This document shows positions 39,861-47,369 of a stretch of 64,000 bases of DNA, in pieces. Numbering within the stretch: the first letter of the stretch is position 1; each line of letters starts with the position of its first letter. The position numbers were made by a program, and so were the translations under genes. The notes under the pieces were generated by a model. The model was not told the origin of the DNA, made no database searches, and was given only the letters and a program-made list of their open reading frames with translations. This stretch comes from Macrostomum lignano (taxonomy: Eukaryota), in NCBI GenBank assembly GCA_002269645.1, contig NIVC01000596.1, positions 62,001 to 126,000 on the forward strand. Reading direction: 5' to 3'.

Positions 39861-42800
39861 ATGAAGTTCTACCAAGAAGCTGTTTTGTTAATTCGACGAT
39901 TTCTGCCTTCGCTGCTTTCTCTGCTGGCCGTCGCAGCAACCCAGAACTCGGCCAGCTCGGAGCAGTACTTCGAATTGCTGCCAAACTACACAGCCTCCCA
40001 TGCCTGCCTGTGCGAACAGCTCACAACAGACACGGAGTTCGACTATGTCTGCCGAATCTGGCCGCTAAATAATGATGACGCAAGATCTACGGATCGGGTG
40101 CCGTGCTCCCAGCTGCCTGACCGAGTGGTCAACAGCCTGACGCTGGACTGCAGCGGATGTCTAAACTGCGCCATGGTACACCTGGACGCTGTCACCCGGG
40201 CCCGGCCGGCTGGCAGGACCGGCGCTCCGCCTCTGCAAGTCGCCGCCACCGGCTGTCTGATTGCAGCCAGCCGCTGCAGCAACTCGACGTTGACTTCTTG
40301 TCGAACTCGACAGACGTCGGTGATGTCGGTAGCGCAGCTGGGACCCCCGGAGTCGCCTGGGGTCGGCGGCTACCTCACCACTATTGACTATCCCGACGAT
40401 GTTGAAGTAGGCGCCACAGGTGACTGCCGACTTCTGGAGTTGAGCCTCGCGAACGTCTCCTGGACAGGTGGCCGCTGTTGCCATTTCGACGAGATACGCC
40501 GCGCTCTGTCCCGGTGCACCCGGCTATCCGGAGTTCGAATCCGCCAATCTCCAACTGTGGCAGCCGCTATAGCATCTGACAGCTCCGCCTGGCTGTCGTC
40601 TTTGCCCGGCGACGGTGGCGGCGGCGTAGCGCTGGAGCTGGTGGACAGCTGCCTGACTGACGACAGCCTGGCCGACTTGGCCGCAGCCGCCCTGGCCGCT
40701 CTGACCGCCTGTCTGACCGCGCCGGACCCAGCAATCGCCTGCGTTGGCCCGAACTCGTCTCTGGCCTGGACTGGCGGCCTCACCCGCCTGGCGCTGCACC
40801 GTCTGATCCGCCTCGCTGCCCACGGCCGCGTGGACAGCCTGGCCAGCCTCTACTCCCGGATGGACAATGCCACTCTGCGGCCACCTGTCCGGTTCTCCCT
40901 GCTCCTCGGACACCGCTGGCTTGTCAAGAGCGCCGATGCCGACAAGCCACTGCCGCGGTCGTCAGCAATTTCCAGCTTGGACCTGTCCGGCAACCGGCTC
41001 ACCCGCGTGCCTGCGGGGCCGGCCGGATTGCTGGACCGGCTGAGCAGCCTGAACTTGAGCAGCAACCGGATAGTCAGTCTGTACAGCTCGGACACCTGTG
41101 AGGCGGGCTGGCCGCACCTGTGCTACTGGTTCCGGGCTGCCTGGCTGTCGTTAAGGGTGTTGGACTTGTCCAACAACAGAGTTGAAGCCATTGGAGCGCT
41201 GCAGCCGTGGCATCAGGTGAACAACTCATGTACAAGAATGCTGCACATTGTGTACAAGAAAGTTAAGAAACCATGTGCCAGAATGAGACAGCCTGTACAG
41301 GAAAATAAGAACCATGTACCAGAAAGCTACACAGCCTGTACAGGAAAACAAAAAACATGTACTAGAAAGCTACATAGGCCCGTACAAGAATGAAATATCA
41401 GTACAGGAAAGCTACGCAAGCCTGTACAAGAATGAATAGAACCATCAATCACTTGCTCCAGGTGTCATTGAACGTCCTCCACCTGCAAAACAACCGCATC
41501 AGCCGGCTGGACCCTCTGGCCCTCGGCAGTCGCCAGCTGACTGCCAGCCTGATGTCGCTGGACCTCGACGACAACCTCTTGACAGCGTCGAGCACCAGCT
41601 GCAGTTCTCTGACGCAGCTCAGGTCGCTCAGTCTGCAGCGAAATCTTTTAGAAGAGTTGAACTGCAGCTTGCTGCTGCCGCAGACTGAACTGCTGAGCAA
41701 AGTGCTGCTCAGTGGCAACAACATCAGCCAGCTTGAGCATGGCTGCCTGCTCAACCTCACCGGCCTTCAGCTGATCGACTTGTCCGACAATCAGCTGAGA
41801 CACTTCGACTATCGCAGTCTGCGCATGCAACCGCGCCGGAGCAGAAGCGCCCGCGCCCGCCTCGTCGCCAACGGCCAGCGACGCATGCCGGTCTGCGACT
41901 GTCGGCACGTCTTCGCCCGGGTGCTCGCCGAGGAGGAGCGCGGGGGGGACGACGGAACTGGCGGCTTCGCTTATCCCGACTGGCTGAACAGGCGGAACTC
42001 CAGCTGCCTCTTCTACGAGGAGGACAGCGAGGGGCGGAGCACCCGGCTGGGCCACATCAGCGACGCCCGGCATGAGGACTTCCTGTGTCTGCTGGGAATG
42101 CAGAGACAGCCTCTGCCGGACAGGTGCCGATCTGTCTGTCTGTCTGTCTGTCTGTCTTAGTGTCTGTCTGTCTGTCTGTCTGTCTGTCTGGCTGTCTGTC
42201 TGTCTGTCTGTCTGTCTGTCTGTCTGTCTGTCTGTCTGTCTGTCTGTCTGTCTGTCTTAGTGTCTTAGTGTCTGTCTGTCTGTCTGTCTGTCTGTCTGTC
42301 TGTCTGTCTGTCTGTCTGTCTGTCTGTCTGTCTGTCTGTCTGTCTGTCTGTCTGTCTGTCTGTCTGTCTGTCTGTCTGTCTGTCTTTCTGTCTGTCTGTC
42401 TGTCTGTCTGTCTGTCTGTCTGTCTGTCTGTCTGTCTGTCTGTCTGTCTGTCTGTCTGTCTGTCTGTCTGTCTGTCTTAGTGTCTGTCTTAGTGTCTGTC
42501 TGTCTGTCTGTCTGTCTGTCTGTCTGTCTGTCTTAGTGTCTGTCTTAGTGTCTGTCTGTCTGTCTGTCTGTCTGTCTGGCTGTCTGTCTGTCTGTCTGTC
42601 TGTCTGTCTCTCTGTCTGTCTGTCTGTCTGCCTCAGTGCCTGTCTGTCTGTCTATCTGTCTGTCTGTCTGTCTGTCTGTCTGTCTGTCTGTCTGTCTCAG
42701 TGCCTGTCTGTCAACAACCCGCAGGTTCTGCCCGACGGTGCGCAATTGCACAGCTCGCTGTCTCCATGGCTGCGCCTGCTACAGAAGCCGCGGCTGGAGC

Positions 42801-45800: not shown

Positions 45801-47369
45801 GACGGCGTCGCCCTCGCCGACTCGCCGGTCGAAGGCGTCCGGCTGAGCCACTGCGTCGTCATCCTGCTGTCCGAGGCATTCTGGACGGAGCAGCGCGACG
45901 AACTGCGGCGGCTCATTCGGCGACGTCATTCGCGTCCGTTCTTCTACATCTGCTTGTCCGGTGGCGGCACCGAGGCGGCGACCGAGCCCGGATTGAAGCG
46001 GCTGGCCGGCTGGTCCGGCGGCGACTGGCGGCACTTGCTGGTGTCCGAGATTTTGCATCCGAGGGGCGGCCTGCTGCGACTCGCCTGCCAAAGCCTTGGA
46101 CTGCAGCTGTTGCCGCGGACGGAGGAGCGGGCGGCCGCGTTTGATCTGCCGTCCGAGGATGACGGTGAGTTCGTCTACCCGTCAGTTTCTGTCCCAATTG
46201 TGTCTGTCCTGTCTTCAATGCCTGTCTTCTATTGTCTGTCTTTCAATGTCTGTCTTCTACTGTCTGTCCTCCAATGTCTGCCCTCTATTGTATGTCGTAT
46301 ACTGTCTGTTCTACAATGTCTGTCTTCTATTGTCTGTCTTCCAATGTCTGTCTTCTACTGTCTGTCCTCCAGTGTCTGTCTTCTATTGTCTGTCTTCTGT
46401 TGTCTGTTCTCCAATGTCTGTCTTTTATTGTCTGTCTTCCAATGTCTGTCTTCTATTGTCTGCCTTCTAATGTCTGTCTTCTACTGTCTGTCCTCCAATG
46501 TCTGTCTTCCATTGTCTGTCTTCCAATGTCTGTCTTCTATTGTCTGCCCTCTATTGTATGTCTTCTATTATCTGTTCTCCAATGTCTGTCTTCCATTGTC
46601 TGTCCTCCAGTGTCTGTCTTCTATTATCTGTCTTCTGTTGTCTGTCTTCTGTTGTCTGTCCTCCAATGTCTGCCCTCTATTGTCTGTCTTCTGTTGTCTG
46701 TCCTCCAATGCCTGCCCCAGGGGATCGACTAGAGCCTAGTCTCTGTGGTTAGGGCTGCCCCGGGTCTGTCCTTCAGCCTCTTCATCCCCCAATGTCCCCA
46801 GCAGGCGGCCACAGCTGGCCAACATTCCGGTCGCCTGATCCCGACTGCGCCGACATATTTGTCCTCTGCTGGCCCGGCGGCGACTGTCCGGAGACGACGG
46901 CGGCCGTTCGACGACTGTCCGGCCGACTGTCGTCGGACACGCGGCCGGCGATCAACGCGCGCAGCTCCGCATCGGCGCCAACCGGCTGGCAAATCGTCGA
47001 TTTGAACGCCGCCTCGCCCCGACAGCTGCTCCGTCGCTATCGACAAGTTGTTGTCATAGCAACCGACTCGTTGTTAGTCTGGCTCCGAGCGGACCGACCG
47101 GACCTGCTGGCCGAATTGGAGCTGCTGCTGCTGGGCGGCCGGCGGTTCAAGCGTCGGGTGGTGCTTGCCGGTGTCGGCCGGCTTGACGGCCGGAGCGGCG
47201 TCGGCTGAGGCGGCTCGCTGACGGACCGGACGCTGAGTCGGCGACGGAGTTTTTGGCGCATAATTTTTGGTACGCGGAGGAGGGCGTGGAGATCAGCGAT
47301 GATTGGTTGGACATTGTGCTGTACAGGCCAGGGGCGGGGCTGCCTGCTGATGGTGTTTATGGTTGCTAA
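39861..47369 (+). CDS. Toll-like receptor, multiple-cysteine-cluster (protostome Toll type), with TIR plus a second TIR-like domain; exons 39861-41216, 41462-42123, 42725-43114, 44035-44496, 45650-46164, 46802-47208 (to 47369 if a 1-nt indel is corrected)
   Basis: All six exons join in phase (~1263 aa as assembled). Features in order: signal peptide, LRRs ([36 protein letters not shown]), internal LRRCT (VCDC...EDFLC), LRRNT ([20 protein letters not shown]), further LRRs, LRRCT ([11 protein letters not shown]), TM ([18 protein letters not shown]), and TIR (NFDVFLWS...ICVH...[12 protein letters not shown]). Confidence 0.88.
42130..42710. repeat. (TCTG)n microsatellite, TLR intron 2
   Basis: Directly visible. 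Confidence 0.97.
43225..44012. repeat. (TTTAG)n pentanucleotide satellite, TLR intron 3
   Basis: Directly visible, with TCTAG/TTCAG variants. Confidence 0.97.
44683..44915. mobile_element. hAT-superfamily MITE, 233 bp, in TLR intron 4
   Basis: Termini CAGGGACTACT...AGTAGTCCCTG, ~85-bp imperfect inverted arms, and a perfect 8-bp TSD ACCTTGAC at 44675-44682 and 44916-44923. Confidence 0.92.
45232..45600. repeat. (GACA)n microsatellite, TLR intron 4
   Basis: Directly visible. Confidence 0.97.
46195..46712. repeat. 14/28-bp degenerate minisatellite (CAATGTCTGTCTTCTATTGTCTGTCTTC)n, TLR intron 5
   Basis: Directly visible. Confidence 0.9.

Follow-up and report, generated by a model that had tools for sequence, protein, structure and literature searches.

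Within a 64,000-nucleotide (nt) stretch of Macrostomum lignano DNA (contig NIVC01000596.1, positions 62,001 to 126,000; the window hereafter, with coordinates counted from its first letter), a six-exon gene on the plus strand beginning at position 39861 is probably a real, unannotated descendant of a Toll-like receptor (TLR) of the protostome (mcc) type, one in which the cytoplasmic TIR domain has degenerated. An earlier note had described a full-length TLR at 39861-47369. That observation is largely real, but "full-length" overstates the evidence for the TIR domain and ignores a break in the reading frame near the 3′ end. The outer part of the predicted protein, with its leucine-rich repeats (LRRs) and Toll-specific cysteine clusters, is well supported by alignment to known receptors; the cytoplasmic part yields TIR signals that are all below the accepted thresholds.

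Platyhelminthes are the textbook phylum without TLRs. The M. lignano genome has been listed with zero TLRs, and a loss early in flatworm evolution was proposed (Orus-Alcalde et al., PMC8609888); as an early-branching, free-living model, this species was used to date the loss to the origin of the phylum. A further survey likewise finds no TLRs in Platyhelminthes (Saco et al., PMC10279657), so the earlier note described the published position correctly. A Toll-type ectodomain followed by a transmembrane (TM) segment and a TIR-like remnant would mean either that the loss is incomplete or that a late stage of it is being seen, and both outcomes bear on how the loss occurred and on how far domain surveys based on hidden Markov models (HMMs) can be trusted in fast-evolving lineages.

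Gene structure and ectodomain

The gene is made up of six GC-rich blocks (63-68% GC) lying between AT-rich spacers that are full of tandem repeats. Its exons and its two repeat-filled introns are as follows.

39861-41216, plus strand: exon 1 (452 codons; start codon, GTGAAC donor; codon log-odds +0.19 in this frame only), with a signal-peptide-like segment (39861-39941), a Cys-rich and then an Ala-rich region, and four canonical LRRs from 40968
41462-42123, plus strand: exon 2 (CTCCAG acceptor; GTGCCG donor, phase 2), with LRRs 5-8 (LRR_8, 6e-13) and the LRRCT1 cysteine cluster (41894-42088), ending HEDFLC
42124-42724, plus strand: intron 2, filled by (TCTG)n (TRF)
42725-43114, plus strand: exon 3 (CCGCAG acceptor, GTGAGA donor), with the internal LRRNT (42729-42818, 30 residues) and three LRRs (LRR_8, 3.7e-5)
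43115-44007, plus strand: intron 3, almost all (TAGTT)n (TRF, 43225-44013)
44008-44496, plus strand: exon 4, with the second LRRCT (GNPWRCSCD..., 44066-44290), a predicted TM helix (44327-44401) and a basic juxtamembrane stretch
45650-46164, plus strand: exon 5 (171 aa), with a TIR-like alpha/beta domain at about 45651-46097 and a box 1-like motif, FDVFLWS
46802-47208, plus strand: exon 6 (CCCCAG acceptor, phase 1), a 134-aa C-terminal region ending in TGA

Joined together, the exons give a single open reading frame (ORF) of 1272 codons, 3.8 kb without an internal stop. Each of the five introns is GT..AG, the phases agree at every junction, and the ten splice sites are all canonical (donors GTGAAC, GTGCCG, GTGAGA, GTAAAA, and GTGAGT; acceptors pyrimidine-rich). 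GC content at third codon positions (GC3) is 0.73-0.83 and at second positions (GC2) 0.43-0.58 across the six exons. By a codon log-odds model whose training set comprised only the other genes of the window, exons 1-5 reach +0.19 to +0.26 bits per codon when read in the proposed frame, both other frames being negative. Exon 6 is weaker (+0.07 to +0.15), again positive in the proposed frame only, and introns and flanks stay below or close to zero in every frame (+0.07 at most). Because of their GC3, their codon log-odds and the phases of the GT..AG introns, the six exons are far beyond chance ORFs and look like host coding sequence; the six-exon structure put forward in the earlier note stands.

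The junction between exons 4 and 5, which joins the membrane anchor to the cytoplasmic domain, can be judged from composition and phase. Exon 5 is coding by composition and contains no Met codon, so that it must be an internal exon; its acceptor takes one nucleotide where the exon 4 donor gives two, and exon 4 is the sole upstream coding exon on the plus strand. Since it is coding without Met and matches in phase, exon 5 would be expressible only through the link to exon 4, and the sequence supports placing both in one gene. A TAA stop (44497) overlaps the exon 4 donor and would end translation immediately if the donor were unused, so an unspliced product consisting of the LRR and TM parts only is also possible.

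The evidence for a Toll ectodomain comes from several directions. Pfam recognizes the LRRs (LRR_8, E = 6.9e-25; LRR_4, 1.1e-15), and a motif scan finds 11 canonical LxxLxLxxN repeats, eight of them within residues 370-577 and the other three within 720-801. Among 5.8 billion protein clusters, TLRs account for two of the three best matches (P0001 from Caligus rogercresseyi, 1.9e-18, and the unnamed P0003, 1.8e-14), after which the list continues with chaoptins and other LRR-only proteins. In BLASTP alignments to the two TLRs (3e-23 and 3e-18), the match begins in the LRRs, crosses the first cysteine cluster and DFLC, and reaches the internal LRRNT, at 25%-27% identity across about 490 ectodomain residues. 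The junction itself, EDFLC plus 20 residues, is aligned residue by residue with DFLC...CPTHCRCYHDGSWSVNIVDC of the Caligus TLR and with CPNNCTCYHDTTWTKNIAEC of P0003; the alignment to P0003 extends further, placing a 10-residue segment of the second LRRCT (exon 4) over LSGNEWSCRC. The LRRNT of exon 3 aligns to the mcc TLR pattern CP..C.CYHD..WS.N.VDC, and cysteine clusters at residues 597-661, 675-704, and 823-897 align to the LRRCT-LRRNT junction and the terminal LRRCT of P0001 and P0003. The P-type/mcc feature of more than one LRRCT with an internal LRRNT is therefore present by alignment and cysteine pattern, on which both modules rest, the Pfam LRRNT and LRRCT models giving no match.

Hydropathy (Kyte-Doolittle) places a signal-like segment at residues 7-27 and a TM segment at 910-934 (peak 1.95) with a basic stretch after it; a weaker, Ala-rich hydrophobic segment lies at 269-288. 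All 15 N-glycosylation sequons fall on the ectodomain side. The first ~340 residues show no recognizable repeats. Judged by these alignments, the outer part of the predicted protein is a protostome-type (mcc/P) Toll ectodomain with the Toll-specific LRRCT-LRRNT junction, and the Toll-type junction that the earlier note described is borne out by the BLASTP alignments that cross it. Of the complete signal peptide-LRR-LRRCT-LRRNT-LRR-LRRCT-TM-TIR architecture claimed there, the ectodomain and the predicted TM segment hold, whereas the "complete" TIR has sub-threshold signals only.

Set beside the mcc TLRs P0001 and P0003, the M. lignano gene has the same order of parts: signal peptide, LRRs, an LRRCT-LRRNT junction of the form DFLC ... 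C..C.CY...WS......C, LRRs, LRRCT, and TM. The beta/alpha domain likewise starts ~35 residues past the membrane with an FDxF box 1. The differences are that its TIR is below thresholds, with CDGGPP rather than RDxxPG at box 2 and no FW at box 3; that it has only 8 + 3 canonical LRRs, preceded by the repeat-free N-terminal region; that there are fewer cysteines in the first half of the junction; and that it carries an extra tail of ~135-190 residues.

Two side observations concern splicing. An alternative GT donor at 42085, in the same phase as that at 42124, would delete 12 residues of the LRRCT-LRRNT linker and keep the frame. In addition, the (TCTG)n array of intron 2 (42131-42712) and an (AGAC)n array in intron 4 (45232-45601) form inverted arms of ~370 nt that are 92%-94% complementary. 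They flank exons 3 and 4, which together measure 879 nt (divisible by three), and the donor phase of exon 2 equals the acceptor phase of exon 5. In the pre-mRNA such arms could lead to in-frame skipping of the LRRNT-LRR-LRRCT-TM part or to a circular RNA. A further stretch of this microsatellite lies at 6876-7411, so that the inverted arrangement may be due to chance.

The cytoplasmic region and the 3′ end

TIR domains carry three conserved boxes: F/YDAFISY (box 1), RDxxPG (box 2), and FW (box 3). Exon 5 partly keeps the first (FDVFLWS), and its version of the second (HCDGGPP) is without the Arg. Out of 24,736 Pfam models, the best for exon 5 is TIR_2 (E = 0.05, 14.5 bits), for which the family threshold is 28 bits; exon 5 residues 50-103 are aligned on model positions 35-92, corresponding to bB, the BB loop, aB, and bC. 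The per-model P-value is ~2e-6, which is the applicable measure because the TIR hypothesis was fixed beforehand. Control searches with the reversed exon 5 sequence and with nine shuffles of it returned zero Pfam matches.

A profile built from the TIRs of three mcc TLRs (P0001, P0003, and P0012), which detects human TLR2 at 7e-26 and also bacterial TIRs, scores exon 5 above 5000 of 5000 shuffles. With hhalign, the match to this profile has P = 2.1e-4 over 109 colinear columns from box 1 on, at a probability of only 46%. When human TLR1, TLR2, and TLR6 are added to the profile, E(Z=1) is 1.1e-3, and 19 of 40,000 shuffles score at least as well as the real sequence. Overall, the targeted profile tests give P ~2e-4 to 1e-3 and are colinear from box 1 to helix D; the exon 5 TIR tests are not independent, since they share one sequence signal, and their values do not multiply. 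The segments aligned by hhalign are given here.

Exon 5 FDVFLWS against FDAFVSY of the TLR TIR profile
A 10-residue stretch of exon 5 against ICLYYRDLP of the profile
A 13-residue stretch of exon 5 against SRRTILVISENF..EW of the profile
Exon 5 EPGLKRL against DPDLRSL of the profile

Both AlphaFold models of exon 5 show the beta/alpha alternation of a TIR. The single-sequence AlphaFold model of exon 5 has a pLDDT of 52, too low to interpret, and is missing helix aB. Given the three TIRs as a multiple sequence alignment (MSA), AlphaFold returns the canonical order bA-aA-bB-aB-bC-aC-bD-aD-bE-aE (pLDDT 71, pTM 0.69), but this model is partly circular, the only alignable sequences being TIRs rather than true homologs.

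A series of results weighs against a TIR and, with it, against descent from a TLR. No TIR model reaches its threshold (TIR_2, 14.5 versus 28 bits; PF01582 is not reported). Pairwise phmmer comparison of exon 5 with the TIRs of the TLR matches is not significant. Searching with phmmer finds no TIR in the PDB, nor among 1.84 billion representative proteins, where the three matches are repeat artefacts: translated tandem repeats (P0143 and P0144) and an NB-ARC repeat protein. Exon 5 lacks box 3, FW occurring only in the frameshifted tail described below. Foldseek against the PDB places no TIR in the top 50 for either AlphaFold model, even for the one with TIRs in its MSA. A TIR at 45650-46164, as claimed in the earlier note, is thus not sustained by the Pfam cut-off or by Foldseek, although these results do not amount to the absence of a TIR fold that the note named as refuting its claim; a HMMER check of the whole protein gives significant LRRs (LRR_8 and LRR_4), whereas TIR falls below threshold and LRRNT and LRRCT have no match.

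For both models the Foldseek matches are Rossmann-type NADP-binding domains (PYCR1, STEAP4, and GPDH; TM-scores 0.4-0.5, rmsd 7-9 Å). The TIR fold is a five-stranded parallel sheet with strand order 2-1-3-4-5, and a short additional strand in the model (53-55), next to strand B, could turn such a sheet Rossmann-like. We considered a true Rossmann/NADP domain and rejected it: the TM-scores are low, and because exon 5 has no glycine-rich loop (GxGxxG), it does not in our view encode a nucleotide-binding domain.

Two features bear on where the gene ends.

47187-47369, plus strand: coding-like sequence that runs on in the -1 frame for 60 codons (stop at 47367-47369; log-odds +0.22, in that frame only)
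47573-47578, plus strand: AATAAA, a candidate polyadenylation signal found by pattern search, downstream of both candidate stops

The frame of exon 6 closes at 47208, and 47369, the gene end given in the earlier note, is the stop of a different frame, attained by frameshift only. The -1 frame continuation scores as well as the certain exons. To reach it, a 1-nt frameshift is required within the 19 nt at 47187-47205, a further point against an intact receptor gene. A mini-intron that would repair the break was sought among 55 GT..AG combinations and rejected: in contrast to the gene's five introns, not one of these shows a pyrimidine tract or an AT-rich interior. The choice is between a base missing from the assembly in a GC-rich run, whose restoration would give a product of ~1326 aa ending at 47369, and a real frameshift that removes ~55 residues. 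A 28-nt repeat (47352-47539; 6.7 copies, 98% identical) starts within the last codons of the continuation, and its first unit encodes the C-terminal GVYGC and the stop.

By eye, exon 6 offers motifs suggestive of a second TIR (DIFVLCW, RRVVLAGVG, and FW), a candidate that we rejected because it has no profile support. With or without the frame-corrected tail, exon 6 has no TIR match in Pfam, PADLOC, or NCBIfam; hhalign gives P = 0.43, and shuffles against the TIR profile are marginal (P = 0.02-0.04). Nor is there sequence similarity between exons 6 and 5. Bivalve mcc TLRs with two TIRs (SPP-2TIR; PMC10279657) resemble the M. lignano gene in having an mcc ectodomain and a cytoplasmic part long enough for two domains, but exon 6, unlike exon 5, is without TIR signal by hhalign; the parallel was dropped because of this and because exon 6 does not resemble exon 5.

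Competing explanations and the reported receptor loss in flatworms

Two observations from outside the cytoplasmic region join those already counted against a TLR descendant: the second LRR block consists of three repeats only, and there is no near-identical or annotated M. lignano protein among the 5.8 billion clusters. TLR-like proteins, LRR-only or TIR-only, exist in groups without TLRs, flatworms included (PMC8609888). By the survey criteria of TIR, TM, and LRR together, the gene would be one of these, an LRR-only TLR-like protein, and it fits that class as long as the rule asks for an HMM-detectable TIR. It might belong there in substance as well, the cytoplasmic alpha/beta domain being a lineage-specific or unrelated module with no homology to TIR, and the weak TIR_2 signal no more than generic beta-alpha-beta periodicity. 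A TIR score under every curated threshold, phmmer searches of the PDB and 1.84 billion proteins that find no TIR, the preference of Foldseek for Rossmann-like folds in both models, and the stated occurrence of such proteins in flatworms would all be expected if this were so. We nevertheless consider it unlikely. TIR is the sole Pfam family to surface, and it does so at the position expected in a TLR; box 1 and the bB-BB-aB-bC stretch are colinear with TLR TIRs, and nothing comes from composition-matched controls. A Rossmann domain should carry GxGxxG or another fitting nucleotide-binding motif, and exon 5 has neither. Compared with the LRR-only class, the M. lignano gene has a TM segment and then a domain predicted to be folded, with position-correct TIR motifs (P ~1e-3 to 1e-6 in targeted tests), rather than a short tail.

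The same divergence could mark a decaying relic, that is, a TLR gene partway through its loss, with little or no expression, a relaxed cytoplasmic domain, and a truncating frameshift at its 3′ end, an explanation that would be compatible with functional loss of TLR signaling in flatworms. The frame break at 47187-47205, with coding-like sequence onward in another frame, speaks for it, as do the extreme divergence of the TIR, the weak coding signal of exon 6, the lack of both a gene model and a matching protein in public collections, and the short second LRR block beside the 0.9-kb (TAGTT)n intron. Long neutral decay, however, should have erased a 3.8-kb open ORF, ten canonical splice sites, and a host-like codon bias in each exon; a single-base assembly error in a GC-rich run may account for the frame break, and the absence of annotation says little where only four genes are called in 21 kb (NIVC01000597.1, 168135-189264, a stretch whose counterpart in the window stops ~15 kb before the receptor gene). 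We give decay little credence for these reasons. Far less probable still is an error in the gene model, by which an LRR-TM gene would be complete with exons 1-4, stopping at TAA 44497, and exons 5 and 6 would belong to another transcript. The overlap of that stop with the exon 4 donor and the in-frame ATG at 46792, with which the ORF 46792-47208 could begin by itself, are in its favor, but exon 5 is clearly coding, has no Met, and has no upstream exon besides exon 4; in phase, its acceptor fits the donor of exon 4 and its GTGAGT donor fits the acceptor of exon 6.

The explanation we prefer, a gene descended from a protostome-type (mcc) TLR, predicts a type I membrane protein with a signal peptide, a diverged N-terminal region, eight LRRs, the LRRCT-LRRNT junction, three LRRs, a terminal LRRCT, and a TM helix, followed ~35 residues later by the degenerate TIR of exon 5 and then by the ~135-190-residue tail of exon 6. 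By analogy, we infer that it works like an mcc Toll receptor. The LRR ectodomain would dimerize on binding its ligand, a microbial pattern or a Spaetzle-like cystine-knot protein, and the paired cytoplasmic TIR-like domains may then recruit a TIR adaptor. Signaling competence is doubtful, though, because of the degenerate box 2 (RD to CD) and because exon 5 lacks box 3 (FW). That M. lignano keeps a transcribed, signaling-competent Toll receptor with a TIR beyond HMM detection is a proposal we make only tentatively.

The surveys probably missed the gene because the locus has no gene model and the TIR does not reach HMM thresholds. The screen of Orus-Alcalde et al. began with a TIR HMM, was run on predicted proteins, and required TIR, TM, and LRR (PMC8609888), so that the gene would escape a TIR-first screen twice. 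The earlier note held that a retained Toll would contradict a clean loss; a Toll-derived gene weakens the claim of loss but, with the TIR sub-threshold, does not yet overturn it. If a signaling-competent Toll has indeed been kept, TLR loss would have occurred after the macrostomorph split or never, rather than at the base of Platyhelminthes, and surveys that start from the TIR would systematically count too few TLRs in phyla that evolve fast. Planarians have TIR-domain proteins and a MyD88, none linked to LRRs (review, PMC7958881); the orphan flatworm MyD88 would then gain a candidate upstream receptor. The locus offers a concrete, testable target in a regeneration model tractable to transgenesis.

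Host genome and neighboring genes

The earlier note made its argument conditional on a Macrostomum-like host, and the neighborhood of the gene settles this point. We identify the host as M. lignano because a two-exon, kynurenine-formamidase-like gene in the window (12847-13393 plus 14641-15002) matches BOX15_Mlig033760g4 [Macrostomum lignano] with 100% identity and 100% coverage, whereas the next match outside Macrostomum is only 36%-37% identical, and because positions 3.5-25 kb of the window are colinear with contig NIVC01000597.1 (GCA_002269645.1), which carries the kynurenine formamidase gene. Outside tandem repeats the identity between the two is 98%-100%, and the repeat arrays vary in length, as between two assemblies or haplotypes; the kynurenine formamidase gene measures 2156 nt in the window versus 1130 nt on the Mlig_3_7 contig. 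A LIN37-like gene lies upstream on NIVC01000597.1. The neighbors of the receptor gene and the repetitive ORFs of the window are listed below.

12847-15002: kynurenine formamidase-like gene
About 20014-20460: PIG-P gene
About 26200-30650: gene for an 839-aa product, family unassigned
48905-50086, minus strand: exon of a RUN-domain protein, 96% identical to UniProt A0A1I8I2V3
35324-36712 (minus strand), 59340-61100 (minus strand), and 28313-29003 (plus strand): repetitive ORFs, translated tandem repeats

Tandem repeats with units of 4-60 nt (67 TRF rows) occupy nearly all introns and intergenic stretches of the window. Where the unit length is a multiple of three, they give rise to wholly repetitive ORFs of up to 586 aa in several frames.

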